A stretch of DNA of 64,000 nt from Callorhinchus milii (GCF_018977255.1 NW_024704755.1:15562001-15626000); one strand, 5' to 3'; counted from the stretch's first letter, positions 2,681 through 62,996 are shown. The notes: generated by a model from the sequence alone, not told the origin. Numbers and translations: made by a program.

Positions 2681-4044
2681 TGAAGCATTGAATGAATCAA
2701 TGAACAATAAACAATCTCAAGATTATTTTTTTAAAAAGACCTGTGTAAAAGTACAACAAACAGACAGTATTGCCCACAACACAAAGCTACAAAACATAAA
2801 TCCTGCAGTATATCCTGCCAAACACTTTCTGACATTGTGACTACATGATAAGGCACCATATCAAATTCATAGTCATTATTAGATATAACTTTGAAGTAAA
2901 CCCACAGCACAGCTCTGGCTGCACTTGTGTTGAGCCAGGACAAAGGCGTAGATCTCCAGAACGTCTCATGTCATTCGAACGTATATCTGTCATTGCACTT
3001 ATAATGAAATATTGTGCACAATAGGTACAACTACTTTGAGAAGCAATGATAAAAAAGCCACTAATAGCTGTAAGTAGTTAATAAACTTCTCTATTTTTAA
3101 TTTGAGAGCGCAATTTGCTTGTAATGCAATTATTTATCGACATTTTGAAATACAGCAGAACCATTGGGGCTTTATCTCTTAGTTGTTTCATGTTAGGTAT
3201 ATTTTTAGCAAATACGTGAACAGTTCAATGTCCATGGCACAAATTTTTCACTGGGTTGGATGAATTGCACCATATTTTGTTGATCAACTTTTAAACTAGC
3301 CTAAGTGTTGTTTTATTAATGCTGAAGAGACAGAGTGACTGGTTTGAGCAATTGATGTTTTTGTTGAGTAAAAGGCTGATTGAACATGTTAAACAATAGT
3401 TCTTTTAGTGGTTTTAGTTCGTGGCTGTTAAAATGATATTTTTTAATCAAAATATTCCATTGTGACTTTTACAAATCTTATCAGATTCATATTAAAAATA
3501 CCTTTGGCAATTAATTATGGATTATAGATAGAGGCGGCAATATTTTCCAAGAAATTTCCTAAAGATATACAATGTATTAATAAATGTAGTTATGTTGAAT
3601 CGGATGCAAAAAGAAAAGCAGCAAAAGACTGAGATGCTAATTATTCGTTATGGTGTAAAACTACATTTAATATACACCAAGAGCAGTTTCTGTGCCTGTT
3701 GCATTACTTAGATCTTGGCTCCCTGCAGATAGCTGCTGCTGCTCCTTCGTGGTTTCTCCGATGTAGCTCTAAATATTCTTAACAGTAGTGTAGGTTTTCC
3801 TGTTTTTTTGGAAGGATATAAATCCAGAACAGCACACGTTAGACTGTTCCCGGCTGCCCTTTGCTTGGTCTGAAAAGGCAATGTTTGAGAATTTAATTAC
3901 ATTCATTCATTTTTCCTCAGTTTTCAGAAATCTCCTCAAATATTTGCAAATTTGAATATGTTACAGCCTTGCCACATAGATTATTAGGTGAAGTTACTCC
4001 TCCTTACAGAACTGAGATCTGCAGAATTCAGCAGACACAATAAA

Positions 4045-5030
4045 ACATACAATACAAAATTGCATTTGTACAGCGCCATTCATGTCGGGAGGAGGTCCCA
4101 CTGGGCTGGAAAGTCAAGGTTTTGGATCTGAGCTGTTGGGTCAGGATCATGGAGGGTCGACGCATGGAGATTAGGAAGGTGACTGAAGACATTGTCATAG
4201 GCGGAGGGACTATGGGATGAAGTGGGGGCAGAGAGGCTGAAGGCCCATCTGCCAATGATGTGTCGGGCAAGTGGGGGACGTGAAGCAGACCAGAGGCTGC
4301 TGAGCGGAAAGAGCAGACATGTTGGTAGGGGTTTAGCAGGTCACAGAAGTAGAGAAGAGCAAGACCGTGAGGGGCTTTGAAGGTGAGGACCAGGATCTTG
4401 AAAGGTATCCTCTGAATGATGGGGAGCCCGAGGAGCTGGGCAAGGATTGGGATGAAAGGTTTGCGGAGCCTGGTATAGAAGAGGAAATGAACTGCAGAGT
4501 TCTGGATTATCTGCAGCCTATGGGGGATGGAGTATGGGAAGTCGACAAGCAATGACCTTTCTTTAATCGAACCTGGATGTGGTGAGTGCGTAGATGAGGC
4601 TCTCGGGGGCCTGGGGTAAGAGTCAGTGGTAGAACTGAGAAATATTGCGGAGCTTGTGAAAGGCAGAGTGGGTCATGGCACAGATGTAGGGGATGAAGGA
4701 CAGTTGAGGATCGAAAGGTACACCTATGTTCCAAATTGGCACCATGAAGTATAGAGTGCATCCATGAAGGGTGATGCTGTCAGCGCCCGAGGTATGAATG
4801 TGCTGACCAAAGCCAAGCACGAGAGTCTTCGTTGTGTTGATATTCGACTGGAGGAAGTTTGCTCTCATCCAGGAGTTGATGTCTGACAGGCTGTCTGTCA
4901 GGACAGCAGTAGTCCTGGAGTCGAGGGTGGAGGCAGAGTAGCAGAGTTGGGTATCATATACATACATGTCTATGGATGATGTCACCAAAGGGGAATATTG
5001 TAAATGTTGAAAAGAAGTTGACCAAGGACC
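4045..5030 (-). mobile_element. L2 LINE 3' fragment
   Basis: Minus-strand ORF remnants LQIIQNSA..., IPFKILVLTFKA.HGLA and DINSWMRANFLQ.N..KT are L2 RT C-terminal motifs. Confidence 0.85.
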
Positions 5031-5470
5031 AATAATAATAATCCTTGCTTTTGATATAGCACTTTATCACGTCATTGAGTCGTCCCAAAGCACTTCACAT
5101 GATATACTGTAAAGTGTATTGACTATACTTTTTTTCAATGGAACAGAATTAATTCCACATCTATATCAACCATTGGCTAGGAAAGAAAATTAAAAATCAA
5201 TCATCATTGATCTGCAGAGAAGTGGTGTGTACAGGTCACTGAATGTGATGTCCCAAGTGCCTCATAGATTAATACACACAATAACTAGTCTTACACAGAA
5301 AGAACAATTATCTGTCTGTACAGTGGTGGATTGCTGCCACTATATCACAGCTCAGATCAGCGACATGGAGAGAAAATATTAGAAGAGAAAGAAAGATGAA
5401 CCACAGGAAAAAACAAACTAGTTGATAATAAACAATGGAGTTCTGCTACATACATACATTTATTGATATA

Positions 5471-5577
5471 CCAGTTGTACCCGTTGCAGCTTTGCTTGCA
5501 ACCAAAAGATCCAATATGGAAGGTGGATTGACATACAGACAGACACATAGACAGAAACTTGTCTTTATTAGTGTAGA
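5471..5577 (-). mobile_element. 107-bp mini-Helitron
   Basis: A|TCTACACTAATAAAG start, (TGTC)n stretch, subterminal hairpin, CTGG|T end (CTRR consensus, AT target). Confidence 0.55.
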
Positions 5578-5744
5578 TAGATAATCATATAAAATTATAT
5601 AAATAAGGGGAAGGGAGAGTTGGAGGGGCTTAAGTCCAGTGGAGGGGCTAAACCCCAGCCAAGGGTGATGTCCCAACTCGAGCCCTAAACTTCACCCTCC
5701 CCGGCTAGTTGCTGCGAGGCCACGGTGCAGAAGATCAACAACAA

Positions 5745-6390
5745 CAACTTAAACTTACACTGCCCTCCAAATAGGGTAGTATCTCAGAGTGCTTAACAGT
5801 GGCGGAGCCAGACTCGATCCGGGGAGAGGGAGGTGACCGTAAGCATGGTCGAAAAGGAAACTTTTAAGGTGGAACTTAAAAAAAGAGAGAGAGGGGGCAA
5901 AGCAGAGGGATTGCGAGAGAGTGTTCCACTGTTTTGGGGCACGGTGGCTGAAAGTGCCACCTCCGATCGTGGAGCGGAGGGTGCGACGGACAAGTAGGAG
6001 GCCAGTGCCAGTCGAGCAGAGGCACCGGCTATTGGATTCGGGGATGAGAAGATCGAAGAGTAATGGTGGTGCCAGGAAGCGAATGGATTTCAACAGGAGT
6101 GTGAGGATCTTGAAGTCGATCTGTTCAGTGATGGAGAGCCAGTGGAGCCTGGCCAGAACTGGTGAGATGGGGTTCCTGGTAAGTATGCTGGCAGCAGGGT
6201 GAGAATGAGCTGGATTTTTGATTTGTAGAACTGGTGATCAGTGAGTTTGAGTAATCCAGATGGGTTTCAGCTGCATTTGGGGTAAGGTACGGTCAGAGGC
6301 GGGCAATCTGGTGAAGGTAGTGGAAGGCGGTCCTTGTCAGGGACCAGATGTGGGGGAGGAAGGACAGCTGAGGGTCAAACCAGACTCTTA
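5745..6390 (-). mobile_element. L2 LINE 3' fragment
   Basis: RTLRSTIGGGTFSHRAPKQWNTL...FKFHLKSFLF with a (ttg)n tail. Confidence 0.85.
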
Positions 6391-6977
6391 GATTGTGCTA
6401 CAAAACGTAGAACTACTGTAACATTAGTTATAGTAATATAGTTCAGGACATGACATGTGACTGCCAGGATGGTGGAAGGCGAACTAGATGGACCTTGGTC
6501 TTCTTTTGCCGAGCAAATTCTTATATTCTAAAGCTTTTATAGCAGCCAGTTTTCCACACAGCAAAGGACCACAAATATTCATGAAGCAAATAATCAAACT
6601 TCCCGGGGGATACATTGCACGGACATATCAAAGTAGAATGTCTCTTCTATTTTCGAATAATACCACAGGATCCTTAAGGTCCACCTCAGGAGGCAGAAGG
6701 GACCTGATTTTAATGACTCACCCAAAGAGCAGGAAGTCACAGTGTGATCCCTTAGCATTGCATTGGATTGTAATGGGACAGTCTGAATAAGTGGGTTCAG
6801 GATAGAATAACGTATTAAATTGAGTTCTACTTACTGTGGTGGGTGAGGTGTGTGGGTGGTGGGGGAGATATAAAGGTTTGAAAACATTGCTTAAAACAAT
6901 TATTATGCAAATCAAAACAAAATTCATTCCAAAATTACATTTGTATAGCGCCTTTCACATTTGACAGGACGTTCCAA

Positions 6978-7235
6978 TCATAGAATTATAGAATTACACA
7001 GCACAGAAGAAGGAGATTCGGCCATCGTGTCTGTCCTAACTCTTTGAAAAAAGCTATCCAAATCAAGCCCACTCCCTGCGCTCTCCACATAGCCCTGCAG
7101 ACTTGTCCTCTTCAAATAATTATCTACTTCTCTCTTAAAATTTGTTATTGAATTGGCTTCCACCATCCTTTCAGGTAATGCATTCCAGATCTGAACAACT
7201 CGCTGCGTCATAATATTTCTGCTCATATCCCCTGT
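6978..7235 (-). mobile_element. CR1 LINE 3' end
   Basis: QRVVQIWNALP...NFKREVDNYL is the CR1 ORF2 C-terminus. Confidence 0.8.
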
Positions 7236-10084
7236 TTCTTTTAACTACTGCAACCAAAGCACTGGACAGTCAGGGATTTGGACCTGGGGGATGTGGAGGG
7301 TTGAGGGCAGGGAAGGTAAGAAGTGGCTGAAGTCTCGGTCGAAGAGGATGGTTGTGATTCGCGCCTTGAAGGAGGCAGCATCATTGACCTGAAACATGAA
7401 CCCATTTTTCTCTTTCCATCGTCTGCTGAGTGTTCCAGCAACTTCTCTTTTTGTTTCAGATTTCCAGCAACTCGAATTCCCACTTTGCTGTGTTGTATAA
7501 ACCCACCGGCTCACATCAGTACAGTAACAAAGAGGCCAAACTTCAGTTGAAGAATATTCTATTGATAAATGTGTTTCATGTTCAATTAAAATCTGTTGCT
7601 GTGTGTTGTATATACAGTCGAGCGGAGAGAAATAAACAAATAATTTACGTATTTCAAGTCCAAAATGCCCCAATAGACTCCTTTCAATATTCTCGGTTGC
7701 TATTGTATTCCCATGTAGAATTAAACATGATCCAGTTCCATTTTGTGATGTTTTCCCTGATGGGCCACTGCAAAGAAATAGACTTCTGAGTCGTGGACAT
7801 TCACATTTATGAACTGGAATGTTTTCGAATCAAATATTTTCCTGTTGTCAGGTTTTGTGTGTAAGAATTTACTCTCCTTGTTTCCACCATTAAAATGTTA
7901 TCTCTGAACCTTATTATCAGTAACCTTGTAGGTGAATTTAAGGTTCTCATCTTTTAATGCTATCTATTCTTCAGGATACTGAATCACTTTAATTGTTTCA
8001 TCACCAGCAAATGAATTAACCTATAATTAGTGCTCATAATTTTTCTCGCCCACAAATATATAGTCAAATCACTTTACAGTATATTCTGTGAAGCAATTTG
8101 AGACATCCTGAAGAAGTGAAAAGCGCTACATTAAATGCAAGTATTATTATTATTAAACAGAGGAAGAAAAGGGAAGAAATAAATAAGCGAGCGAGAGAAA
8201 GATGGAAGAAAGTGAGACCGATCTATTCACTTTACACATTTTGAAACTCTTCTTCTGTATCGTATTGTAGTTAAACTATGCTATAGTAAAATTACATAGC
8301 TCTGGAAAAAATTCTCATTAGAGAAAGATAAGGGAAAACATCACTTACCGCCATTGTAATCACTTGTTGAGAGTCTCCCTGAACCAGTTGCTGGGTATAA
8401 CAAATGTTTTCTGATTGATTAATATGAAATACCTTGCAATGTCTTATGACTTACTGTATCCGTGGTTCAGAAATGAGTTGGATACGATTGGAAACAAGAG
8501 TGCTTTTCATTAGTAAGTGGAATCACTCTTCAGATCAGCAGGAAATATGGTTAAATATTAGCAATTGACTTTTATTTTCTGCGGGTTGCATTATTTCTTA
8601 ATTTTTATACAAATCATTCACGTTTATAATAAGTAACTAGATGATACTAAAGCTGAAGTACAGACCTAAGGAAACAACATTCTATTCAGTTTAATAATAA
8701 TAATTATTGAATTTGATAGAGCGCCTTATCACGTCGTTGAGACGTCTCAAATTTCTTTAGAGAATATTTTGTGAGCAAAAAGTGAATATAATAAAGATTA
8801 GTTTGTTGCAGCATAAAACGGATATTAAAAAAATGTTTACCAACAATCTTAGGCTACACCACGAGAATCTGACAAATCGAATGAAAAGAAATGGAGTACA
8901 TGGAGTGATCTGTAAGGCAATTGCAAAGATTGGATTCATTTAAATTTTTAAAGCTATTTGAAATCATGAATACAAATCTGATGATTTCAGTACATTGTGT
9001 ATCAAGTTACAATAATATTTAGTAGAAGTTTGACGATAGATATGACAGAAGTAAAATACATTTTTTCCATTGTTGCAGCAATATTTATGTTCCTTACAAC
9101 TTCTACAATCAAGTGAACAGTTTCTCTCTATAAACACAATTCAATATGTAGCTCACGATTCAAGTGTCCAGGTGAAATAGAGAAATAACTGAATGGTGAT
9201 AATAATGATTCAACTACTAATTAAATAATCACCCTTGAATAAATAATAATAACAATTTACACAAGGCTGTTTGTGTGAAAGCGCTTCACATGATTTATTG
9301 TTTCTGTTGCAGGTGAAGTTGGCATCTTATTTGCACGCAGGAATGTCCCAGGAATAGCTATGAAGTAAGTGACCAAGTTTCTTTGGGGAATTGTTGGCCA
9401 TGATACCAGGGGCCATTTTCACTTTAGGAGCAATGCTATGAGATCGTTAACTTACACCTGAACCGGCAGCACAGACCTCGTTTCAACATCTTATCTGAAG
9501 GATAAGAACAACAAGTTTGAAATATGTAGCGCCCATCACGCAGGAGAGAGTATTCGAGCATCTGGAACTACAGCTACGACAATACAGAATGAACGCTTTA
9601 AGGCATTGGAGCATCAGCCTAGAATTGTAGCTCAAAGTCTCGACCTTGGACCTGAACCTACAACTTTCTGATTCAGAGGGACATCACCGGAACTGTGTTG
9701 AGAGAAGGGAATTATAGAGCGGACAATGACGTTTGTCCCTGTGATGACCGTGAAACGATATTTGAATCACTTTGTTTGTAGATTTGCCAGCATCGATCAG
9801 AAAATAATCTCAATCACTGATTTATGCCTCGGGACGTCCTCCCGATGTAAAAGGCTGTATATAAATTAAGTTTGTTTTTGATATCATCGATTTCTTACAT
9901 TATGTGCCATGGGGGGAAAATGAGGAAAGAAATCGTAACTGTATTGAAATGAATTTGAGCACACTTTCTGCTATCTGAGTTTATTTCACCTTTAGTAATC
10001 ACATGTAATACAGACATGTACAGAAAGGCACCACTCGCTGTGTCTGACTCTGATGGCCTGTAACACGTGAACATAGATTATCCC

Positions 10085-12390: not shown

Positions 12391-14176
12391 AGCCAATCAA
12401 GGGGGCCTTTTTTTTCTTGAGGGATTATCATTAGGCGTGTGGAGTAAGGATACTTGCCCAAAGTTTCGCTCTGCCGGGAATCGAACCCAGGCCGCTCGCT
12501 TGAGAGGCGAGTGCTCAATAATAATAATAATAACCCTTGTATTTAATATAGCGCATTTCACTTCTACTAAACTTTCAAAGCGCTTCACAGAATATACTGT
12601 GAAGTGAATTGACTGTCCATTTGTGGGCAAACCCGTGTCCCTGTGATGAATGTCACACGTTACGTGATTTGAGTTACTTTGTTCATAGAATTGGCAGGAA
12701 CTGTCAGAAATCAATTAAAACACTGATTTATACCTCGGGATGTCCTCCCGATGTTATAGGCTTTATATAAATGAAATTTGATGTTGTTGGTTTTTTTAGA
12801 CTATGTGCCATGGGGGACAAACAAAGAAGGAAATTGCAACTCTATATTGAAATGAATTTGAGCAGACTTTATGCTACCTGAGTTTGTATCACCTTTACAA
12901 ATCACATGTAAGACTGTCAGATACAGAAAGTGAACCCTCGCTGTGTCTGACTCTGGCTCTGATGGGCTGTAACAAGTGAACGTAGATAATTTGTTAAAGA
13001 GTAGGTTGCTGTGACACAGACTTCCTGTTTCTTTGGGTTCATGAAATATAGCTGATGTGTAGTGTGCAATCCGAAACCACACTCCTACAGTAACAGTGAG
13101 AAAATAACTGCATCCTATTAATAGGAAAGAAAAGGCTGAACACATATCTAAACACATAAAGGTGTTCAGCGTCACTATTGACCTTGGGTGCTCTCTGCAA
13201 CTAGAAATGCTATTTTGAACCAATTAATAGAAAAGCCGCTAACAGATAGAAAATGCTAAAATCAACTGTGCTCTATGTTTAATCTGAGTGTCTGAATGTC
13301 TTGCAATGAAATCATTTCTTGACATTTTCAAATACAGCAGAACAATTAGGATTTCAACACTTCATTTTTTCATATTAGATTTTTTTTAAGCAATTCAATG
13401 ACATTTGAACAGGTCAACACCCAGGCCTCAACTTTTTCACTGTGTTGTTTCACTAATGCTGAAGAGACAGAGTGACCAGAGGAGACTGATTCATGTAATT
13501 TCTTTTTTTATTCAAAGGGTGATAGAATATGTTACACATTTCAGAGGTTCCTAACTTTTATATATATTCAGGTTTTATTTTTGTAGCAGTTAAAGGACAA
13601 TTCAAACCTCTTTGAGAGGCATACAACTAACTGGTTACCTTTAAATTGTTATCAGATTAAGACAAAAATGCTTTTTCGCAATTAAGTATTGTTATATCGA
13701 TATAGTAACCAATATTTTCCATGATTTTTGCTAAAGACAGATCACGTAACAAACTAATAAATGCAGTTACAGTTAAAAAAGGTGCAAGGAGCATTGCAGC
13801 ACGAGACTAAGGTGGCACATGACTCGGTAAATTGGAAAACTACATCTAATATACACCAGCAAAACACAAAATACTGCAGATGCTGGAATCTGAAACAAAA
13901 CAGAGAGAGCTGGGAAACCTCAGCAGGTCAGGCAGCATCTGTGGAGAAAGGAAAGTGAGTCAACGTTTCGGGTCCACGACCCATCGTCAGAATTTGAGAA
14001 AGGACAAGGGTTCTGACGAATATCAATATCAGTTCCTGAGCATGTTGAATTATTTGGATGTTGGTTTCCTGCAGATAGCTGCTGCTGCTCCTCTGTGGTT
14101 ACTCACATGCAAACTCTGTATCCTTAACTGAACTTTGAGGATTTCCTGTTTTTGAGAGATGTAAATCCAGAACAGT

Positions 14177-14212
14177 TTACGTCAGATTGTTCGCGGCTGC
14201 CCTTTGCTTGAC
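14177..14212 (-). CDS. Gene 2 terminal exon C, truncated (VKQRAAANNLT*)
   Basis: ttgccttttcag| acceptor; homologous to the gene 4 terminal exon, but the ITIM Tyr position is TAA and the downstream ITSM reads TEF. Confidence 0.6.
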   Translation of the reverse strand, partial: VKQRAAANNLT

Positions 14213-14672
14213 CTGAAAAGGCAATGTTTGAGAATTTAATTACATTAATTTGTTTTCCTCAGTCTTTAGAAATCTCCTCGAATATTTGCCAAATATTATT
14301 TACATCACCGCTTGCCCCATAGCTCATTAGATAAAGGCTCTGTACCTCACAGAACTGAGTTGAACAGAATCCAGGGGCTACAAATCTGTTCCTTATTGGA
14401 TTAGTTGCGCGTTGACAACAACATTGGCTGGGAAAGAAAAGTGAAAATCAACCAGGGTAGCAGTTGTTCAAATAATCTGGAGATTAGTGGGATTTTTTTT
14501 GCTAAACAGTGGCAGATTGCTGCCATCATTTCATAGCCCAAGTCAGCGACAGAGAGAGAAAAGATCAGAGGGGAAAGAAAGATTGACCACAGAAATATAC
14601 AAACTAGCTTATAATAAACAATGAAGTGAGTTCCACTATATAGAATGTAGAAAGAGAAATTCTCACATATAC

Positions 14673-14783
14673 CTGGGCATACACATCTCCTTCGTCTTGT
14701 TTTTTTGCTCTTGGAGTTTTCTTGCAACGATTCAAATCCATTTTGGCATAAGTCACTGACTCATTCTCAGCTCCCTGCAGCAT
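14673..14783 (-). CDS. Gene 2 exon 7, cassette B (VTYAKM ... DVYAQ)
   Basis: 111 nt, phase 0-0; tandem paralogue of cassette A, followed by a homologous intron segment. Confidence 0.75.
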
Positions 14784-37272: not shown

Positions 37273-37382
37273 CTGTCAGGAAATCAATTAACCAATAATT
37301 AGTGATTACACAAATCAAATAAAAGCAATACAACAAACAGAGAGAGGGGAAGAAAAAATAAATAAATAAATAAATAACATAC

Positions 37383-50402: not shown

Positions 50403-51607
50403 CTGTAGAACAGATAAAGGGGTAGAATCATGATGTTACTTTGGGGGAATAAACCTTATTCTGATTTCTATTTCCAATTTTCTGACAGTCGAGAAGACTT
50501 GGAGGATTGTAAATCGTTGGAAACCTTTATAGCTTTTGGGGGGATGTTGATGTGCACATATCGGTGCCCTATTTGCCTACAAATATAATTATGAAGCCTT
50601 TGGAGACTGTCCAGGACGTGATTCTGTGCCATATCAATTGCAGTGACTATTATTGCTATTTAACCCACCAATGCAGCCCTGGGGAGGCTGATTTTTGGTG
50701 GGGATATCAACATCGAGGACACATTGAATCTGCCTCTTTGGTGCATGCGTAAGTTCCCACAGCATTTTTGGAAAAGACAAGGGATTTCTCCCCGGGTCCG
50801 GCCAAGAATTCCCAGATAAAAAATGGTCATTTACCTCATAAATATTTTTGGAACATTGTTGCTGACAATTGGATGCCGGCTTCGCGTACAAAAGCCACTC
50901 GTTTATACAACAATTCATGCCGATGTGAAAGGCGTCAAAAAATATATCATATGTGTTATTATTATCATTAGTAAGCCAAATGCGCCAATATCTTCCATAA
51001 ATTGTACAAATTGGGCCAACTACTGATTGAAGGCAATTAAATTACATATTTAAAATCATGGGACATTTATCTTGTGGATACTTCAAATTAAATTATCTAT
51101 ATTTTAAACTGGGGGGAAAAATTAATGCAAGGTGAGGATCTTAAAGTTTCAGAGACTGCAAATCAGTTAGAGGGTACCGAACGGTTACTGCTGGAATAAA
51201 CTGATGAGGGAGACATCACATTCCTTCCAACATGAGGAAATTCTAAAATCGTTTCTAATTATATTTAGTGTATTTGGTGTATTTAAGTTGAAAAGGGACG
51301 GACGTATATGCCATTAATGCTCAGATATGTCACATCATAAAACATGATCCATAATATTATATAACGGTGAATTTCGGCGGGCGGCAGTTTGAATTGTGCA
51401 CAATTGTGTAATAAAAAAAATTATTCGGATTTTGCAGCGTAACTATATTTCTTTCCCCAGAGAGGGAACATTACCATTAATTTGCAGAAAATGACATTGA
51501 AGAATACCACTGTAAATGTAACGAAAACAATATAAAAGATTCCGAAACATTTGTTTGCGGGATATTTCAACATAGGAACAGTCTCTATATCCATATCATT
51601 CACTTAC

Positions 51608-51928
51608 CGTACACGATTAAACGCGATCCATTTCCATTTCCTACTTTTTTCCCCTCTAACACCAGTTCGCAGTGATAGACTGCAGCATCCTGAATATTCA
51701 CATCCAGAAACTGGAAGAAGCGATTTCCTTTACTTTTAACTCCAAACCGTTTCCTGCTATCCTCTTGTGTGTGCAGGTATGTCGTCTCTCCCTGCTTCCT
51801 CCAGTACACTTGGATACGTGAAGAGTGTAGAGAGAATGGATAGCCGCAGTAGAAGGTGATGTTTGTTCCTCTGTTTGCCGTCAAGTATTCAGGGAATTGA
51901 GTAATTTTAACGGAAGTATCACCAAAAA
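51608..51928 (-). CDS. Gene 4 exon 2, VJ-type Ig V domain (subfamily II)
   Basis: 321 nt, phase 1-1; ITFYC, VYWRKQ, DAAVYHC, GNGNGSRLIV. Confidence 0.94.
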
Positions 51929-52198
51929 CTATCAAAAATGAAATATTGATGTATATTAATATGGACAAGTGGGTAGGAAAGCAAAAAAAATTAAATTAGA
52001 CAAAGATACATACAGACACACTGAGAGTAAGTCAGTAAACTGTGTTTATACCGAAACTACTCAATAATAATAATAATCCTTGCATTTGACATGGCGCCTT
52101 GTCACGTTTTCTCAAAGCGTTTCACAAAATATACTGCAAAGTGTAGTGGCAATCTACTTTCATTGCTAAATAAACTGGGTGATAGAGCAATCACTTAC

Positions 52199-52247
52199 CC
52201 GTGGAAATAATCACCAGGACACACAGGTATAACAAAGGACTCAACAT
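52199..52247 (-). CDS. Gene 4 exon 1, leader MLSPLLYLCVLVIIST(G)
   Basis: 49 nt, phase-1 donor G|gtaagt; hydrophobic signal peptide. Confidence 0.9.
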
Positions 52248-52328
52248 AATTCTAACCGCCTGGTGCTGCTGATCTGAATGTTGCTGGACTGTAACAAGCG
52301 TTTGCAGATTGATGTGAAGTACATCCTG

Positions 52329-52345
52329 TGACGTTTTACTTCCTC
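52329..52345 (-). promoter_or_regulatory. GAGGAAGT (PU.1/ETS-like) plus ACGTCA (CRE half-site) upstream of gene 4
   Basis: Motif match about 90 bp upstream of the ATG; function untested. Confidence 0.45.
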
Positions 52346-54779
52346 TCTCTTTAGAAAAGGCCAATTGATTAATAGATTGTCGCGATTTACACTGAAACAG
52401 TGGCTTAGAATTGTACCGACAAAAGCAAGGGAAGTGTGCAGAGAAAATGGTGAACGAAGATAAAATGTATCCGAAGTTCAGGTTTCAAAATAACTTTTTA
52501 CTTCCTGAACCAGCATGTTGTCTCATGCACTAAACCCTGTTGTTTCCCAATGTAGATTCTGGGATGAATTTTATGACACATCTATTTACTTTACAGTTCC
52601 TTCATACTTCACTCTACTCTTATTATACACAACAAAAAGAAAATGCCAAACCTACTATTATTTACCGTATATCTATTTAATCGGCAGAGTTTTAAGAGAT
52701 TTTGTTTTATTAAATAATGATTTATTGAAGTTAATGTGTGAGACTAAAAGTGCAGCTGTGTATCCATATAAACAGTTTACATACATTCAAACTTGTATCT
52801 AAAAGATGGAAAACTGCGTATTATTGATTGATAATAACGGACTATAAGCTGTGCACAGTCTAATATATCAGTAGTTCACGCGGAGACTACATATTTCTCC
52901 CACGGAAGGTTGATGGTGCAGGAAGCTAATCATTGAGGAGAGTATTGTGTCAGCCCGGTTCAGTTACGAGCAGTATCGCCTCTGAATCGGAGAGTTGTAA
53001 ATTCACCACCACTACATAAGAACTCTAAGTTCACAGTCTAGACATACAAGAGCAATATATTTTAATATATTGTTGTTGATTTCACGATATCGATGCAATG
53101 CTTACTGTGTCTAGATCAGTTATTACTGTGTACATTTATGAAGACTGTGACTGCTTGCCATGTATTGCATAAAAGTACACAATGTTATTTTGGAAATTAT
53201 TGATCATATGCCCAAACCTGGAGCACCAGGGCATTGAAGTCGCAGTAATTTAGAGAGTTTATCTGCTGGTGTTTTTTGTGGATCTGTTCACTACAAAACA
53301 CAGTACATTTCCAATTTGCCCGAATGTGGACGGTACAAATAAAGACGAATTAACAGTTAAGAAGACTTAACAATTTACATACTATTGATTTACGGCGTAG
53401 TTTTATATTGAATCGCGAGGTCAATGTAGAGATTTTAGATTCCGTCTTCGTGGCCATGTCTATCTGTTTCACTTTGTGCAACTTGGAAGGAAGCCATTTA
53501 ATTAGTCACAGAGCATATTTATATTTAGAGTTATAGCAAATTGTGAATTTCAGTCCTATCAATTGCGGTAAACCAAATTTGCTATTTTGTATTGACGGCA
53601 AAGATATTCTCTTTATACACAAATAAAGCAAATTGCAGACCAGAGGGAGTAATAGCGTCACAAACTTGGAGAGGCAAGCCTTTGGGTTGTATCAGAGGGC
53701 CGGAGCCCATGTGCAAAGATCAAGCCTCCAGATGTCGCTCTCTCTCTTTCTCTGGGGCTCCAGGAAACAGACCAAAGATCAAGCCTATGGCAAATGGATG
53801 GCCTGGTGGTTTGGAGCAAGGTGGATGGTGAAAATGAATGCTTGTAAGAGAGATTGTAAGACACCGATGTGCACCCCTCCCACCCCACTTAAGCCGCCCC
53901 TCTTGGATTGTGTCGTGTAAAGAAATGTGCCATAACGCTGTTGGGCTGCTAAGGTTTCCCTCCTGTTCTGATAAAACTGTGATGCTTTAACCATGCCCCT
54001 TATATACCAGTCAGAACTTTTCTTATAAACTATTTTGCAAGTAAATATGTACTCCCTGTAGCCCTGAAGTAAAAGTTCCCCTTTGGAATAGGTTGAGATA
54101 AATAGTGAAAAAGTATCAGAATTCTCTATGTTTAATCTATCTGTGTTGGTCTTGGATAAGAGTTGAACTCTTAGTCAGGTATCACCTAGCAATGGTTGTT
54201 GGACCCGAGAGTGTGATAACTACAAGAACGGGCACTGGCAGTCAAGATTAAATTTAATTCTAACGATTTTTCTCTTTACAGTTGTTGTAAAGTCGTTTCC
54301 AATGTATTAAGCATTATAACCATTATTTCACTCAATAATTATTTCACTTTAAATAGTTACAATGTCATGAAAAGCAAAACCCTATTTCATGATTATACTG
54401 TTCAATATAAGGCACCACCTTATCATCTTGTCGACGCCTCTCAATTTGCTTCACGGGATATAAAAATATTGTCATACTAATTTCAAGTGCTTTGAGATGC
54501 CGACGTGAAGGGTGCTATATAAATGCAAGTTGTTGCTGTTCACAAATATTAGTTCTGATCGACCTATTATGCAATACACGGCAGTGGGGTAAAGAGGAGA
54601 ACGTAAAGGTGAAAATGGAAACGTAAAATTGATAAGAGTATAGTTCACATTTAGCCATCATTTCTAGTAATACTCACACAAAGTGACCCAAGATTACAAT
54701 GCACTTTTTCCCCTGACTCTTCCTACACATCAACAAAGGCAATTTTAATGCCCAATCAAGAATTTTGGAAAATATTAAC

Positions 54780-55190
54780 AAGAACAATAATAAAATTACA
54801 TTTCTATCGCACCATTCTTGTCAGGAAGATGTCCCAAGGGGCTGCACAGAAAGAGTTTTGGACACAAGTTGGGGGTTGGGGATGGGGAGTATAGAGGGCA
54901 AGGGGGGAAGCAGGGAGATCGAAAGCACGGTCAAATAGGAGGGTCTTCAGATGGGTCTTGAAGGAGACAAGGGAGGGGGCGAGGCAGAGGGACTGCAGGA
55001 TGGAGTTCCAGAGAGTGGGGGCAGAGTGGCCAAAGGCCCACTCACCAATATTAGGGCAAGCAAGGCGGGGGACGTGAAGCAGGCCTGAGCCCACTGAGCG
55101 GAGGGAGCGAGCAGGATGGTAGGGGATTACAGGGTCGCAGAGGGGTAGGAGGAGGTGACCGTAAGCACGGTCAAAGAGTAAAGTCTTCAG
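54780..55190 (-). mobile_element. L2 3' fragment
   Basis: GLLHVPR...AFGHSAPTLWNS...FKTHLKTLLF. Confidence 0.82.
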
Positions 55191-56974
55191 CTGTGATCTA
55201 CAAGGTGGAGTGAAGCCTAGCTAGGACTGGTGTGATGGGGTTACTGAGTTTAGTGTCAATGAGATTACAGGCTTTGGAGTTTTTAATCATTTAGCTTGTG
55301 GGTAGTGGAGAATGGTGAGAAGGGCATTTGAGTAGTCAAGGTACGAGGTGGCTAAGGCATGGAGAGGGTTTTCTGCTAACGTGCGGGTGAGGTACCATCC
55401 AAAAAGTTCAAATAATCCATAATTCAGCTGCTCCTACCCACACCCACACTAAATTGTTATGTATCACCCCAATCCTCACCAAGCTCTACTGGCTCATTGT
55501 CTTAGAACGGATCAACTTCAAGGTCCTCACCCTCACATATGAAATCTTTCACACATTTTGAAAGGTTTCAGATGCTCCCGGATTCACACCAAAATTTAGT
55601 AATTGTGTAATTTGTAGGCTAAGGTATAACAACCAACAATTAAACAATTCAAAAACAACTCAGTTAAATTCCAATAAAAGAAATGCAATTTTCAAATAAA
55701 ATAAGTGTAAAAATATTGAATAGGTACTGTGGAATAATGATACTGCAGAATGTTCAGTTGCTGATCAGTCTTCCATTTGAACTACGAGTACAATAAAGCT
55801 AATATTCCTTGCATTTGATATAATAAAAATAATAATATCCTTGCATTTGATATAGCATCTTATCACATTTTCGAGACGTCTCAAAGTGCTTCACAGATAT
55901 ACTGTAAGCTGAATTGGTTGTATACGTTGTGGGTGAAACACGGCAGCCAATTGCGCTCAGCTGTGTCCCACAAACAGTCGTGGATTGAGTGACCAAATTA
56001 TTATTATTTTTAATTTTTTAGGGACTTTGTCAATATATTTCGAAACTTTCATATGATATATTGTAAAGTCGTAATGCTGCGGATATTTTATAGGTGAACA
56101 CGGACGCCAATTTGTAAACTGCCATGTCCCACATACAGCAATTGATGGCCAATTTTATTGGGGAGACTGTTAGCCAAGTCACCGATATCAATTATTTTCT
56201 CTAAGTATTGTTAACATGTTATTGTGAGTATATCTCGAATGACCCAAAAACGTTATTCACAAGAAAATATACATATATAATAAGGTTGAGCGTGCACCAG
56301 TAAATAGCTACAACTCAAGCATCTAGCCCTCCACGAGATTATATTACCCACTAACCAATCATACGAGATCCTTACAGCAACACGTGTATGCAGAAAAAGT
56401 ATACCATACATGTGACTACCGAGTTATCAGATTGTATGCATTGGTTTTCCGAGATAATTCAAAGTAATGTTTGATGGGAAACTGCAAGTGATTAAAGCAC
56501 AAGCAGGTGCTAAGTGTAGTGTACAGACAATCGTCGTAACTAGAATTAAATCGGGGACACACAACGTTACCACGCTAGCCAATCCTGTTATCAAATTTTG
56601 TCAAAATAACAGAACGTTACAGCGCAAAAATAGCCAATTCAGCGCAACTGATTCCTGCCGATACTCCATAAATTACCTAACCTAATCACTTCTCCCTCAC
56701 GTCTGCACCAAACTTCCTCTTAAATATGTTGTGCTTCAGCCACAATTTCCATCATGAGATCCACATTCTCACCAGCTTTTGGGTAATTGAATTGGGAAGC
56801 GTTTTGGATGCATTTAAGTTCACAACTGTTCTGAAAGTCGCACCAACCACATCAAATTATTTCCCGAGCTGACAAAGGCAGAAGGTCAAAAGTCATCGCA
56901 ACTTATTCATTTTTGGCAATCGCCAACCTTTGTTGCAGACAGCAATGGGTTCAGATGAGTCCCAAAATTGCCAT

Positions 56975-57368: not shown

Positions 57369-60300
57369 TTGCTATTATTCTGTTCATTTATCGGGACTGG
57401 TTTAAACCCTTTGCTGCTCTGCAACCCAAGGGTTGTCGATTGCCAAATATGAATATGTGGCTTTGAAGTTTGATCTCCTCCCTTTCTCGGTTCAGGAAAT
57501 AATTGTGTGTGGTTGGTGCGCTTTGTCGAACAATTGTGAATTTAGATAAACCGGGATTCAATCACTGGGGTAACAGATTAGCTGTAATGTTCAAATTAAA
57601 CAACAACAAATTAAATAGGTACAGAGTCTCAAATACAGTATTTATTCTAATTTGCTGAACTTGCGTTTTGATTTATGCATCCAAAACGGTCCCCAATTCG
57701 ATTATCTCAAAGGCAGTGAGAATGTGGAACTCACTGACGGAAGCTGTACATATTTTAACAGGAAGCTTCATGCAGCCAAGAGGGAGAAGGGATTTGAGAG
57801 GGGTGATTTCGCGAGTATAAAGAGTGACAGGAATTATTTGCTCTGAATTCGCTGTTTCTGCATGTAATGTTCTATGTTATTATACATGACAACATTTGAT
57901 AAAAGGATGGGTTAACATATGAGTGTTGTATGTATGCGATTCAGTTCTAATTACATGTTTTTCTGTACATTATACTTGACACATAAAATCGGCTTGAGCG
58001 TTAATCACTTGCACTCTCACTTCAAATTGATTCAGAAGACCAATGCATACAATCTGATAGGTCGGTAGTCACTCGTACAGTGTACTTTTTTTGCAGGCAC
58101 ATATCGCTGTAAGGATATCGTATGACTGGTTAGTGGGTGATAACCTCATGGAGGGCTAGACGCTTCGGTTGTAGTTGCTTGGTGAAAGCTAAACCATGTT
58201 ATTTATGTATAGTTTCTTGTAAATAACTGTATTGGGTCATTGGAGATAACATCGTAATAAGTAAGTGAAAATAATTTATACTGGTGGCTTGGCCAACAAG
58301 CTCCTCAATAAAATTGGTCAATCCATTCCTGTGTGTGGGACATGGCAGTGTACAAATTGAAATCCATGTTCACCCACAAAACAGCCACAACATAACTACC
58401 TTACAATATATGATTCAAAAGAGTGCGAAAAGCCTCATATATGAGGGTGAGGACTTGAAGTTGATCTGTTCGAAGACATTGAGACATTGAGCTTCGTGAG
58501 GATTTGAGTGACATGCAATAGTTTAGTACTTGTGCAGTTAGGAGTGGTGGAATTCTGGATTAGTTGAACCTTGTGGATGGTGAAACTGAGGAGATCAGCG
58601 AGAAATACATTTGAGAAGTCCAAGACGGAGATACAAAGCATGGTTCAGAATTTTGCTGTTGAATTCCAGTATGAAGTAGAAGCAGATGCCGTCAATTTGA
58701 TGGAAATGAAGTAAAGCAGCCTTGATTAGGGAATGAATATGAATTAGGAAGGACACCTGAGAATGGAACCAGATGTCAAGGTTGAGGACTCGTTTGGTGA
58801 GTTTGAGGAATAGGCGTGGAGGCTAAGGCAGTCAGAACCAAGGGAACTAAGGAAGTTTGCTTCCATCTTGTCCATGTTGAGTTGCAGAGGGTTGGTGCTC
58901 ATCCAGACCTTAATGTCTAATCAGCAGACAGACAGCACATTAGTGGGCCTGGTATTGCTATTGGAAGTAGAAAAGTAGATTTAGGTGTCATTTGCATAAC
59001 TCTGGAAGATAACCCCATTTCTGTGGATGATGTTGCCAAGAGGAAGCTATAATCCAAGTTTGCAATGCAAGGGAAAGCCTCAATCAAAATCCATTCATAC
59101 TAAATTCTGTACCCCAATCACACCAGCCCTAGCTTCTGTCCATCTTACCCCCTCCTTCCGCTCTTTTAGATCACAACTGAAGACCTTTCTCTTCGACTTT
59201 GCATAAAGTTAACCCCCCCCCCCACCACCATGCTCAGCGTCAGGCTTCAACATGTTTAAGCGCTCCGAGATGCTGCCCTATATGAAGGGTGCTATATAAT
59301 GCAAATTGTTGTTGTAGATTTGCCTGGTTCAAAAAACAGCAATATAATGACAAGAATAAGGAATATATTATGACATACTGCACTTATTTAAAGTGAAATA
59401 ATTACAGAAAATATAACGCTTGCAATGCTTAATACATTGACAACTTTATGCTCGGAAAAGCGGATAATATTAGTAGACAACTGTAAAAACAAAAGTCATT
59501 GGAATGAAATTTAATGATCACCGCTCGTGCCCGTTAATGTACTTATCACACTCTCGGGTCCAACAACCATCACTGAGTGTTACCCAACTAGCAGTTCAAC
59601 TCTGAACCAAGGCCAACACAGACAGATTAAACACATGGGATTGTGATACCTTTTTAGTGTTTATTTCAATCTACTCCGAAATGGAACTTTTACTTCGGCT
59701 TAGCCTTTGGTCTGCTTAATAATAATAATAATAATAATACTTGCATTTGATATAGTGCTTTTCACGTCGGGAGGACGTACCAAAGTGCTTCACAGAACAC
59801 ACTGTAAAGTGAATTGACTGTATATTTGTGGGCGAACGCGGCAGCCAATTGCGCACAGCAATGTCCTACAAACAGTCGTAGATTGAAAATGACCAATTTT
59901 TTTTATTATTGTTTTTGGTTTTTTCGAGGGATTCCTAAAACAGCAGAAAGAAAACAAGAGAGTGAGAGAGAAAGAGCGACCTCTGGGGGCTTGATCACCC
60001 CTTTGTTGCACACCGGCTCTGGCCCTCTCTGATATCCAAAGCCTTTGTTTCCAATTTTGCTACACTAATACTTCCACTGTTCTGCAAATTGTTTATTTGT
60101 GTTTATGTAGTAACTTTCTTGGCAACAAAAAATAGCAAAATTCGTTTACCACAACTGATAGGACTGAAATTCAGAATTTGTTTCTAACTCTAAATATAAA
60201 TAGACTCCATGACTAATTGAATGGCTTCCTTCCAAGCTGCACAAAGTGAAACAGATAGATATGGTGACGTTGCCAAAACATAAAAACTCCTCATTCACCT

Positions 60301-61140
60301 CATGATTCAATGCAAAACTATACCATAAATCAATAGTGAGTCAATTGTTAAGTCTTCTTAATTGCTAAATCGTCTTTATTTGTACCGTTCACATTCAGGC
60401 AAACTGGAAATGTATTTTGGAGTGAATAGATCCATAAAAAGCAGCAGCGGATAAATTCCTTAAATTACTGCTTCTACAATGCCCAGGTGCTACAGGTTTG
60501 GGCATATAATTAATATTTTCCAAAATAACATTGTGTACTTCTATGAAGTACATGCCAAAAGATTTGGAGTAAATGTCAAGCAGCAAATGCATGTTTTCAC
60601 AAATGTGAACAGTTGTAACTGATCTACAAATCTCAGCATTGTAGCAATATTGTGAAATCAAGAACAATTTATTGTAATAGATTGCTCTTGCCTATCTAGA
60701 CTGTGAACTCTGAGTTCTTATGTGGTGGTCACAAATTTAGAACTCACTGATTCAGAGGCGACACTGCCTCTAACTGAACCGGGCTGACACAATACTCTCC
60801 ACAATGAATAGCTTCCTGCACCAACCTTCCGTGGGAGAAATATGCAGTCTCCGCGTGAACTACTGATATATCAGATTGTGCACATTTTCGGGCATGATCG
60901 ACGTGCTTGAAGAGATGATTTATGATGAATAATGCAGTTCTGCATAGTTTAGATAAAAAGTAGAATGTATGTAAACAGTGTTGATCTTGCACTTCACCTC
61001 ATGAAATGTGAAATGCAATTTCCTGCTGCATTTCACTCACAAATTATGCAGTCAATTCACTCTACAGTACATTATGTAAAGAGATTCAGGACTTCTCGAA
61101 GATGTGATAAGGTTCTATGTCAAATGAAAGGATTATTATT

Positions 61141-62054
61141 AATACATCCTTATTTAATAAAATACAATATCTTAAAAATCGACTGATTAAATAGTATACG
61201 GTAACTAATAGTAGGTTTGACTTTTGGTTTTATTCTGTGTAATAAGGGTACAGTCAAGTATGAAGAAGGAACTGTAAGGTTAGTAGATTAGTAGTAGTTT
61301 CTCTACATTGGGGAACAACTTCCTTCAGTGCATTAAGCAACATGCTGGTTCAAGAAGCAATGGTTATTTTTAAAAAAGAAAAAAAAAAGAAATATAGTTA
61401 CGCTGCGAAATCTGAATAAAAAATATTATTATTTTAAATTGTGCGTAATTCAAACTGCCACCCACCTAAATTCACCCTCATATAATAATATCGATCATGT
61501 TTTATGATTTGACAACTCTGATCATTAATGTAATATAAGTCCGTCCCTTTTCAACTTAACTACACCAAATACACACATTTATAATCTGAAACGATTTTAG
61601 AATTTGCTCGTGCTGGAAGGAATGTGATTTCTCACTGTTCAGTTTATTTCAGCAGTAACCTTTCGGTACCCCACTACTGATTTCTAAAAGTTTAAGGTTC
61701 TTAATGTGTACAATTATTTTTCCAGTTTAAAATATAGATAAATTATTAATAATTAATAATTAACTAATTAATAATTAGTAGATGAATAATTATTAATTGA
61801 TTAATTAATAATTATTAATTAATACATCCTTATTTAATAAAATACAATATCTTAAAAATCGACTGATTAAATAGTATACGGTAACTAATAGTAGGTTTGA
61901 CTTTTGGTTTTATTGTGTGTAATAAGGGTACAGTCAAGTATGAAGAAGGAACTGTAAGGTTAGTAGATTAGTAGTAGTTAATCTACATTGGGGAACAACT
62001 TCCTTTAGTGCATTAAGCAACATGCTGGTTCAAGAAGCAATGGTTATTTTTAAA
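61141..62054 (+). repeat. Near-identical 234-bp direct repeats (61141-61374 and 61821-62054) enclosing a copy (61386-61745) of gene 5 intron sequence 63150-63510
   Basis: Direct string comparison. Confidence 0.9.
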
Positions 62055-62283
62055 CCTGAACTTCGGATACATTTCATCATCTTTCAGCGTTTTCCCTACA
62101 TATCTCTTTTGCTTTTGCCGAAACAATTCTAAGCTATTGTTTCGGAGTAAATGGCAACTGCCTACTAATCAATTGGCGATTCCTAAAGAGGGAGTCAAAC
62201 GTCACAAGATGTACATCATATCAATCTGCATATGTTACAGACCAGCAACAGCTTCAGATCAGTCGCACCAGGTGATGAAAATT

Positions 62284-62332
62284 ATGTTGAGTCCTTTGCT
62301 TTTCCTGTGTGTCCTGGTGATTATTTCCACGG
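62284..62332 (+). CDS. Gene 5 exon 1, leader MLSPLLFLCVLVIIST(G)
   Basis: 49 nt, G|gtaaga donor; inverted paralogue of the gene 4 leader; an in-frame upstream ATG lies at 62275. Confidence 0.88.
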
Positions 62333-62675
62333 GTAAGAGATTACTCTATCATCCCGTTTATTTAGCAATGAAAGTAGATTGAGTAGTTTCAGTTTAAACA
62401 CTCCAGTTTACAATAACAATAAAATTACATTTGTATAGCGCCTTTCTCAAGTCGCTGGAGTCAAGTCAATGTTTCACACCTGAGCTGGGGGTCAAGATCG
62501 GGGAGTGTGGAGTGCAGGGGGAGAAGGAGTGTGATCGAAGAATGGGTCTTGAGACGGGTCTTGAAGGAGTTTACTGATATACTCTCAGTGTGTCTGTATG
62601 TATCTTTGTCTAATTTAATTTTTTTTTGCTTTCCTACCCACTTGTCCATATACATCAATATTTCATTTTTGATAG

Positions 62676-62996
62676 TTTTTGGTGATACTTCCGTTAAAAT
62701 TACTCAATTCCCTGAATGTTTGACGGCAAACAGACGAACAAACATCACCTTCTACTGCGGCTATCCATTCTCTGTACACTCTTCACGTATCCAAGTGTAC
62801 TGGAGGAAGCAGGGAGAGACGACATACCTGCACACACAAGAGGACAGCAGGAAACGGTTTGGAGTTAAAAGTAAAGGAAATCGCTTCTTCCAGTTTCTGG
62901 ATGTGAATATTCAGGATGCTGCAGTCTATCACTGCGAACTGGTGTTAGAGGGGAAAAAAGTAGGAAAAGGAAATGGATCGCGTTTAATCGTGTACG
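62676..62996 (+). CDS. Gene 5 exon 2, VJ-type Ig V domain; remaining exons lie beyond the window
   Basis: 321 nt, phase 1-1, open; 6 nt differences from the gene 4 V exon. Confidence 0.92.

Follow-up and report, generated by a model that had tools for sequence, protein, structure and literature searches.

A cluster of VJ-C1 receptor genes with ITIM/ITSM-type tails in Callorhinchus milii, probably part of an uncharacterised multigene family of cartilaginous fish

To which receptor family do tandem genes belong that combine an Ig-light-chain-like ectodomain with a tail like that of SIRP-alpha? The question arises from a 64,000-nt stretch of Callorhinchus milii scaffold MU249845.1 (15,562,001-15,626,000), hereafter the window. 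An initial annotation had ascribed this DNA to a probable cartilaginous fish, correctly, and had read its genes as a lineage-expanded, single-C1 family of SIRP type. We consider it likely that the window lies within a large birth-and-death cluster, itself belonging to a multigene family spread across cartilaginous fish. The likeness to SIRP-alpha is one of architecture and tail, and SIRP orthology is not demonstrable by the comparisons made here.

In the window, B, C and D are intact genes, E is represented by its 5' part, A is a pseudogene, and there are several V relics. A to E are genes 1 to 5 of the initial annotation, which had listed five genes and one relic. All five are related exon sets, but A is a pseudogene, E runs past the window end after its leader and V exon, and at least four V relics were found. 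Self-tblastn recovered the V exons of B, C and D on the minus strand and of E on the plus strand, as well as the C1 exons of B, C and D, at the coordinates given below. E-values among related exons were 1e-20 to 1e-73, far beyond chance in 64 kb. Each intact gene is laid out as leader, VJ-type V, C1, uncharged transmembrane (TM) segment and tyrosine-motif tail, as had been proposed. Frames are open, all splice junctions are GT-AG, and the exons for leader, V, C1 and TM share phase 1. The TM segments lack charge up to the stop-transfer K/R. Self-tblastn of the window found no second C1 exon in any gene, leaving one C1-set domain each.

Gene D (46786-52247, minus strand) is intact and encodes 368 aa. 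Its leader (52247-52199), VJ-type V (51928-51608), C1 (50402-50091) and TM (49241-49128) exons are followed by a 44-nt cytoplasmic exon (48402-48359) that precedes the tail; with this exon the product is 368 aa long, rather than the 366 aa first predicted. One tail exon (47921-47811) encodes MVYATL...TVYAQ, and the last exon (46941-46786) encodes the ITIM VTYAAL, the ITSM TEYAEI and the stop. The exact product is on record at NCBI (MU249845.1:15,608,786-15,614,247, equal to 46786-52247 of the window) under the automatic name SIRP-alpha-like. P0001, from an older assembly, differs from it by two amino acids, both in the TM segment.

Gene B (14177-22393, minus strand) has an intact open reading frame of 358 aa, and its exact product was not on record in the database lookup. 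It comprises a leader (22393-22339), V (22142-21843), C1 (19974-19669), TM (18807-18694) and 44-nt exon (15617-15574). There follow a tail exon with the ITIM VTYVTL and a TVFAQ motif that has lost its tyrosine (15265-15155), a tail exon with VTYAKM and DVYAQV (14783-14673), and a last exon (14212-14177) in which a stop occupies the tyrosine position of a former ITIM. The decayed remainder of this exon continues past the stop down to 14053. The annotated neighbor P0006 ends at the same position (...NNLT-stop). Gene C (27911-37437, minus strand) has an open frame of 339 aa, with a leader (37437-37383), V (37272-36967), C1 (34631-34320), TM (33631-33521), 44-nt exon (29832-29789) and a tail exon with the ITIM VAYVKL and TVYAQ (29440-29330). 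In exon 7 (27991-27911) a 1-nt insertion causes a frameshift and early stop, and a decayed relic of the last exon lies at 27435-27252 (minus). The NCBI annotation calls a 229-aa product that starts at the leader and V exon of gene C (L004 24814-25462).

Gene E (62239-62995, plus strand) is an inverted, head-to-head duplicate of gene D. Its leader (about 62239-62331) and V exon (62675-62995), the latter 96% identical to that of D in amino acids, lie within the window, the C1, TM and tail exons falling past its end; a possible extra 5' exon is located at 58577-58711 (plus). The inverted duplication pairs 58.4-64.0 kb (plus) with 55.6-50.6 kb (minus) at 74-89% nucleotide identity, and the NCBI annotation holds a 302-aa product on the strand of gene E that runs off the locus. 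Gene A (3707-8354, minus strand) is a pseudogene with a leader-like segment (8354-8310), a V exon carrying in-frame stops, a frameshift and replacements of both canonical cysteines (8020-7710), and a frameshifted relic of the last exon in which the ITIM tyrosine has become cysteine (3884-3707). No C1 or TM exon of gene A was found in the window, and the NCBI annotation of window positions 1-9557 has no gene call there. A decayed V-like relic with a stop (23670-23840, minus) lies upstream of the leader of gene B, at a distance of about 1.3 kb, and similar V relics occur at 12710-12633, 9803-9633 and 1049-996 (all minus).

The cluster extends past both edges of the window and covers at least 150 kb, from approximately 15.47 Mb to beyond 15.63 Mb of MU249845.1, with the neighboring paralogues P0006 and P0005 at 15.55 and 15.48 Mb. 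Flanks of up to 10 kb around the cluster loci held family genes only. At E<1e-30 the family numbers 188 clusters (representatives), all of which, in the databases, are predicted proteins. Twenty of 20 sampled clusters came from sharks, rays or chimaeras, and named matches came only from Callorhinchus, Heptranchias, Heterodontus, Mustelus, Scyliorhinus, Chiloscyllium, Hemiscyllium, Carcharodon, Mobula, Hypanus and Hemitrygon. Judged from the named matches and these 20 of the 188 clusters, the family appears confined to cartilaginous fish. In the phylogenetic tree, two clades of C. milii genes nest within one clade with 99/98 support, elasmobranchs hold at least four older lineages, and human SIRP-alpha is the outgroup on a very long branch. 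The two proposed subfamilies (A/B/C and D/E) were recovered by identity and in the tree alike. Paralogue dN/dS values of 0.3-1.1 show relaxed or diversifying evolution and are no proof of function.

Each tail is built of repeated 111-nt exons that encode one ITIM-like tyrosine and, 23 residues on, one ITSM-like tyrosine. The four tyrosine motifs of gene D comprise two canonical ones (VTYAAL and TEYAEI) and two near-motifs (MVYATL and TVYAQT, off-consensus). The tail strings first reported for this gene are present, but TVYAQ reads TVYAQT across the splice and is not a canonical ITSM. Canonical ITIMs are thus VTYVTL in B, VAYVKL in C and VTYAAL in D, and TEYAEI of D is the canonical ITSM. In B and C the tail has partly decayed, by a Y-to-F change, a stop and a frameshift. 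Given the motifs lost in B and C and off-consensus in D, some copies may be weakening or non-functional. Among 76 TM-bearing relatives, 45 have at least one canonical motif; some relatives combine a short tail with charge at both ends of the TM (R at its start and D/E-H at its far end).

In the ectodomain a V domain precedes one C1-set domain, which matches Pfam PF07654 (E 6.7e-16 and 9.4e-18), with V-set/Ig matches besides. The V exon, bounded by AG and GT, runs uninterrupted through a contiguous J-like GxG(S/T)xLxV strand (GTGSRLIV or GNGSRLIV) to the splice donor. A rearranging Ig or TCR identity is ruled out because V and J-like strand share this one exon and there are no separate segments. 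The AlphaFold model has a pLDDT of approximately 72-93 per 10-residue block over two Ig domains, a TM helix at 238-262 and then a disordered tail. The closest PDB folds to the ectodomain were Ig light chains (E ~1e-14). UrIg2 ranked among the top PDB hits. Domain profiles of the family were scored against reference sequences, of which those of SIRP-alpha, NKp30 and B7-H6 were checked against the PDB. Among 12 V references, the leading scores were PD-L1 (36.9 bits), NKp30 (33.5), TCR-alpha V (31.7) and SIRP-alpha D1 (26.5, aligned end to end). By these scores the V domain is no closer to SIRP-alpha D1 than to PD-L1, NKp30 or TCR V. The C1 profile gave MHC II beta2 (DQB1) 56.7, Ig lambda C 53.9, SIRP-alpha D3 51.7 and B7-H6 C 49.3 bits, which we regard as equal, and SIRP-alpha D2 36.8. 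Since V and C1 score about alike across several IgSF families, the machine names of family members are inconsistent: SIRP-alpha-like or SIRP-beta-like is commonest, and some are called 'NCR3 ligand 1-like' or 'CD276 homolog'.

Could the genes nevertheless be SIRP (co-)orthologues in the strict sense? On this view a single-C1 'proto-SIRP' ancestor would have expanded in cartilaginous fish and given rise to the mammalian V-C1-C1 SIRPs. The order of parts is that of SIRP, and the tail of gene D runs collinear with that of human SIRP-alpha, as first claimed, with the four motifs in order and a score of 72 (z 8.4), against 34-58 for six other inhibitory tails, all on provisional reference sequences. 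SIRP-alpha D3 and the family C1 domain have an N-terminal VPPT motif in common, the commonest machine names point the same way, the short-tailed members with charged TM ends resemble SIRP-beta, and chicken SIRP-alpha reportedly consists of V and one C1. The comparisons of V, C1 and tail nonetheless diverge: the tail, on the provisional SIRP-alpha sequence, favors SIRP-alpha, whereas V and C1 do not, D1 ranking fourth and D3 not surpassing MHC II beta2 or Ig lambda C. The family searches retrieved no intermediates outside chondrichthyans, SIRP-alpha branches as a distant outgroup, and the tail likeness may be convergent, as ITIM-ITSM spacing and a TEYA-type motif recur in unrelated receptors. 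The conserved SIRP synteny is NSFL1C - SIRP - PDYN/STK35; the best 120 matches listed in an NSFL1C search were all tetrapod. We regard SIRP orthology as rather unlikely. Of the original proposal, an expanded V plus single-C1 family with ITIM/ITSM-type tails stands, but its ectodomain has no specific SIRP affinity.

Membership of the shark NCR3 (NKp30) family, reportedly MHC-linked, non-rearranging VJ genes in nurse shark, seems very improbable, even though the FR4 region (VYxC...GNGTGSRLIV) resembles that of human NKp30 (IYVC...GTGNGTRLVV), NKp30 is the second V reference, divergent NCR3 genes are multiple in sharks (five in white shark; MT914154-61 in nurse shark), and isoforms skipping C1 would resemble V-TM-tail proteins. 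NCR3 is described as VJ-only, while B, C and D have a C1 exon and lack the TM arginine of NKp30, and no family member bears the machine name NCR3. White-shark NCR3 adjoins AIF1 on chr19, where the listed genes end at 115.6 Mb, but P0084, a white-shark member of the family, maps to a 193.5-Mb record. In catshark, NCR3 lies at 13.5 Mb of chr13 and the family members at 80.77 Mb of a 198.8-Mb record, and the chr13 gene list has no such gene at 80.77 Mb. These positions speak against membership only indirectly, and MHC-linked shark NCR3 looks like a different locus. That the genes encode B7-family ligands (V-C proteins like B7H6/NCR3LG1 or CD276) and not receptors is scarcely credible. Two of the machine names would suit such ligands, PD-L1 dominates phmmer matches of the gene D V domain, and B7-H6 C matches the motifs CExxxFYPxxxxxTW and VYxCxVxHxSL. 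However, human B7-H6 V reaches only 8.5 bits on the V profile, B7-H6 C scores no higher than MHC II beta or Ig lambda, the J-like GxGxxLxV strand of the family has no counterpart in the V sequences of human B7-H6 and PD-L1 compared, and repeated ITIM/ITSM pairs in the tail are receptor-like.

We thus favor, as the probable reading, a cartilaginous-fish-wide VJ-C1 receptor family that is uncharacterised. The initial annotation had called it possibly uncharacterised; NCBI and UniProt already list members as machine-annotated predicted proteins, but our literature search found no paper describing the family. With SIRPs it shares an N-terminal VJ-type V followed by C1-set domain(s), an uncharged TM and a clustered multigene layout; with SIRP-alpha, a four-tyrosine tail in two ITIM/ITSM-like pairs, by the provisional reference sequence. 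It differs in having one C1 where mammals have two, in encoding each tail pair on a duplicated 111-nt exon, and in being far larger and apparently confined to cartilaginous fish. NKp30/NCR3 has the same non-rearranging, germline-joined VJ-type V with the GxGxxLxV strand and a nearby NGT sequon and is likewise multicopy in sharks, but the present family adds a C1 domain and long ITIM tails, and its white shark and catshark relatives appear to lie off the MHC class III NCR3/AIF1 locus. Ig light chains share the V(J)-C1 ectodomain, and UrIg the germline-joined V exon; in contrast to these and UrIg2, the genes described here encode a membrane receptor with an inhibitory tail, one C domain and no V/J split. 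UrIg/UrIg2 were reported from elasmobranchs (PMC12227049), whereas this family is present in Holocephali. Like KIR, LILR and teleost NITR, it forms tandem birth-and-death clusters that mix ITIM-bearing, charged-TM and pseudogene copies, with V or ligand-binding domains diverging faster than membrane-proximal ones. Those families use C2/I-set domains (V + I in NITR), and we know of none among them with a C1-set membrane-proximal domain.

The genes would encode non-rearranging type I membrane receptors with an Ig-light-chain-like ectodomain, in which a germline-joined VJ-type V precedes one C1-set domain, an uncharged TM helix and a cytoplasmic tail. The residues by which the SH2 domains of SHP engage ITIM/ITSM motifs show conservation throughout jawed vertebrates (PMC12151841), and by analogy the family is probably inhibitory through SHP phosphatases. 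The V domain would bind a ligand, Src-family kinases would phosphorylate the paired tail tyrosines, and the phosphotyrosines would recruit the tandem SH2 domains of SHP-1/SHP-2, dampening activation of the receptor-bearing leukocyte as in SIRP-alpha. Relatives elsewhere with charged TM ends and short tails are probably activating counterparts, which would make this a paired-receptor family. It is possible, though doubtful, that the genes represent, in surviving single-C1 form, the stock that gave rise to SIRPs, or in a wider sense a non-rearranging VJ-C1 stock near the antigen-receptor root; cartilaginous fish alone would have kept and enlarged it, as a paired inhibitory/activating system with polymorphic ligands of its own.

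The gap-free window was read in six frames and searched against itself by tblastn with exon translations, which placed V exons at ~22.1, 37.2 and 51.9 kb, C1 exons at ~19.9, 34.6 and 50.4 kb and repeated tail exons at ~15.2, 14.7, 29.4, 27.9, 47.9 and 46.9 kb, all on the minus strand. Self-tblastn also returned a broken V at 8.0-7.7 kb (minus strand, gene A) and, on the plus strand, one further V exon at 62.7-63.0 kb (gene E). The repetition of exons is not a product of chance, since copy-to-copy E-values in this 64-kb search ranged from 1e-20 to 1e-73. Splice sites were set by eye and then compared with database relatives. Genes B (22393-14177, 358 aa), C (37437-27911, 339 aa) and D (52247-46786, 368 aa), all on the minus strand, have open frames throughout with GT-AG at every junction, and share the exon order leader, V, C1, TM, a 44-nt cytoplasmic exon and 111-nt tail exons. 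The leader, V, C1 and TM exons each end in phase 1, as is usual in the immunoglobulin superfamily. The 44-nt exon moves the frame to phase 0, which is the phase of the 111-nt tail exons, each coding for xxYxxL ... SKK ... xxYAQ. The initial annotation had counted five genes and one relic; B, C and D are indeed intact, but A is a pseudogene, E lies only in part within the window and there are at least four V relics.

The NCBI annotation includes the exact 368-aa product of gene D at MU249845.1:15,608,786-15,614,247, and genes C and E have calls there too. Combined with a database locus that agrees with window positions 1-9557 at 100%, this sets the window at MU249845.1:15,562,001-15,626,000 in assembly GCA_018977255.1. 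The exact product of the 358-aa gene B model was not found on the record, nor were those of P0003, P0012 and P0024 (older-assembly proteins; P numbers denote predicted database proteins). Two residues of the gene D TM exon at 49128-49241 (L/F, V/L) differ from older-assembly protein P0001, a discrepancy of either allelic or assembly origin.

Gene A contains stops and a frameshift, has lost Cys residues and has a frameshifted last exon, and neither a C1 nor a TM exon was found for it in the 64-kb window. Four decayed V-like relics lie on the minus strand at 23670-23840, 12633-12710, 9633-9803 and 996-1049. Three of these are situated ~1.3 kb upstream of leader exons of subfamily 1 (A, B and C), and the duplication unit therefore once had a second V exon or half-gene. 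Gene E duplicates D in inverted, head-to-head orientation, and the window includes only its leader and V exon. The duplication pairs 50581-55562 (minus) with 58414-64000 (plus) at 74-89% nucleotide identity, the blocks being ~3 kb apart and the two V exons 96% identical in amino acids. The older model P0002 opens with a 45-aa exon at 58577-58711 (+), 3.5 kb upstream of the gene E leader and with no counterpart in gene D; this may be an alternative first exon or simply an artefact of the prediction. An interspersed repeat, recognisable by its ORF motif ARLHWLPI..FKIL..L..LL.PY.P.R.LRS..SGLL.VP, occurs in at least seven copies between and inside the genes, including 41367-41585 (+), 5917-6153, 17472-17693, 54999-55142, 28389-28526 and 4274-4441, and two copies coincide with the region of gene A's absent C1 and TM exons. 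The blocks at 1353-1811, 24781-25489 and 21417-21889 are simple-sequence DNA and not genes; such blocks include TC-rich low-complexity sequence that several frames read as SLSLSL and, within intron 2 of gene B, a CCN-rich (proline-coding) repeat.

Pfam identified the C1-set domain (E 6.7e-16 and 9.4e-18), with V-set/Ig matches as well. The V exon continues unbroken through a J-like strand, GTGSRLIV (GxGxxLxV motif), up to the donor site, and the gene is thus germline-joined and non-rearranging. The AlphaFold model comprises two confident Ig domains (pLDDT ~72-93 per 10-residue block), a TM helix at 238-262 and a disordered tail. Its top PDB fold matches were immunoglobulin light chains (E ~1e-14), for which reason the ectodomain is described as light-chain-like (VJ-C1); the Foldseek list against PDB was saturated by Fab light chains, so that it demonstrates the V-C1 fold and does not discriminate SIRP. 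Some predicted isoforms omit the C1 exon (P0098 vs P0050, P0132 vs P0069, P0160 vs P0080), giving V-TM-tail proteins with a layout that would be similar to NKp30; since the Ig exons are in phase 1, omission of C1 preserves the reading frame.

Under the strict ITIM and ITSM definitions quoted in PMC12151841, the gene D tail carries a single ITIM (VTYAAL), a single ITSM (TEYAEI) and two near-motifs, and one ITIM survives in each of genes B and C. Tail erosion is under way in the A/B/C subfamily: in gene B, one motif shows a Y to F change and a stop codon stands in place of the Tyr of the last ITIM, an ending identical in the annotated neighbour P0006, and a 1-nt insertion frameshifts exon 7 of gene C. 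The gene D tail aligns collinearly with that of human SIRP-alpha across all four tyrosines (score 72, z 8.4), while the tails of PD-1, BTLA, CD33, CEACAM1, PECAM-1 and LAIR-1 score 34-58 (z 1.1-4.8). The parallel drawn earlier between this tail and SIRPA is upheld by the alignment.

The ectodomain gives a different answer on SIRP membership. Profile searches of the PDB from the V and C1 alignments were led by multi-domain proteins (titin, antibodies) with additive domain scores, which cannot rank single-domain families, and were replaced by per-domain scoring of a human reference panel. The SIRP-alpha, NKp30 and B7-H6 ectodomains were matched to PDB, NKp30 and B7-H6 being identical to 3PV6_B and 3PV6_A, respectively, and SIRP-alpha agreeing with 2WNG except for allelic D1 differences; the 2WNG sequence was used for scoring, and the rest of the panel consisted of other well-known human domains. 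The family V profile scored PD-L1 at 36.9 bits, NKp30 at 33.5, TCR-alpha V at 31.7 and SIRP-alpha D1 at 26.5. With the C1 profile, HLA-DQB1 beta2 reached 56.7 bits, Ig lambda C 53.9, SIRP-alpha D3 51.7, B7-H6 C 49.3, Ig kappa C 47.3 and SIRP-alpha D2 36.8. By these sequence scores, V and C1 point neither to SIRP nor to another named family in particular, which accounts for the scattered machine names of the database proteins (SIRP-alpha-like, SIRP-beta-1-like, tapasin-related-like, CD276 homolog, Ig lambda-1 light chain-like, NCR3 ligand 1-like and MHC class II beta-like). A search with the human NSFL1C protein returned only tetrapods among its best 120 matches, none informative on shark synteny. 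The SIRP-type family proposed in the initial annotation is therefore favoured by architecture and tail but not by the V and C1 scores, and SIRP membership is unproven. Membership in B7H6 was rejected, as the B7-H6 V domain scored 8.5 bits on the family V profile.

The family could alternatively represent shark NCR3 (NKp30), several MHC-linked genes of which exist in sharks: five in white shark beside AIF1 on chr19, one labelled gene on catshark chr13 and eight in nurse shark. This reading is unlikely on the indirect grounds of domain content and map position. The family has a C1 domain, unlike NCR3; a white-shark member maps to a record of 193.5 Mb, against a chr19 gene list that stops at 115.6 Mb; and catshark members map to 80.77 Mb on a record of 198.8 Mb, a position at which no matching gene is listed on chr13.

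Cartilaginous-fish proteins were the only ones to reach strong E-values, both with the gene D protein as query and with a profile of 14 sequences. An exhaustive profile search yielded 188 representatives at E<1e-30 (clustered at 50% identity); its best 150 matches were family members and giant multi-Ig proteins, with the nearest outgroup not visible among them. All 20 sampled clusters came from sharks, rays or elephant shark, and in these the members of one species share one chromosome-sized record. The 10-kb flanks contain family genes only; with two further paralogues to the left of the window, at 15.55 and 15.48 Mb, the cluster extends over 150 kb or more. In a maximum-likelihood tree built on V+C1, all C. 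milii genes fall into one of two clades, B/C/P0005/P0006 or D/E/P0003/P0009/P0010/P0024, which bears out the two subfamilies proposed earlier. Both nest in one 99/98-supported clade that also includes elasmobranch genes, and elasmobranchs have at least four additional lineages common to sharks and rays; by this topology the family is old, and its expansions took place independently, lineage by lineage. In amino acids, genes B and C are 69% identical in V and 88% in C1, with synonymous divergence of 0.35 and 0.14, respectively, which suggests that gene conversion keeps the C1 exons alike as the V exons diverge. The dN/dS ratio between paralogues (0.3-1.1) is not decisive for selection.

Architecture and tail are the grounds for proposing that these receptors work in a SIRP-alpha-like manner. 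The V domain would bind a putative ligand, the paired tyrosines 23 residues apart would become phosphorylated, and the phosphorylated pair would dock the tandem SH2 domains of SHP-1/SHP-2, inhibiting the receptor-bearing cell. Jawed vertebrates share conserved motif-binding residues in these SH2 domains (PMC12151841). Four family members located outside the window, P0009 (C. milii), P0064 (Heterodontus), P0083 (Scyliorhinus canicula) and P0084 (Carcharodon), have short tails and a conserved TM segment with charged ends (R start, D/E-H end); judging from these features, they probably serve as activating partners of the ITIM forms and couple to adaptors. With such partners, the family would be a paired-receptor system evolving by birth and death, of which the pseudogenes, relics, inverted duplication and faster divergence of V than C1 are supporting signs.

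The locus is not new sequence, as its genes are already public as predicted proteins. A literature search, covering key immunogenetics work only in part, found no published description, and to that extent the earlier suggestion of an uncharacterised family stands; we place it as such with the SHP-coupled paired Ig-like receptors that are built in the SIRP manner. Conflicting as they are, the machine names all denote this one family, and their harmonisation is advisable. Cartilaginous fish are the oldest lineage having antibody/TCR/MHC immunity, and germline-joined VJ-C1 genes are sought as relatives of the antigen-receptor precursor, examples being UrIg, UrIg2 and NCR3. To these few non-rearranging antigen-receptor-like genes is added a large VJ-C1 family that numbers over 100 sequence clusters and occurs in chimaeras as well as elasmobranchs, with SIRP-alpha-like inhibitory tails and probable activating partners. 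It bears on the timing of SHP-coupled paired receptors and on the origin of the SIRP architecture and, if so constituted, would give sharks a major, as yet unstudied system of innate receptors.
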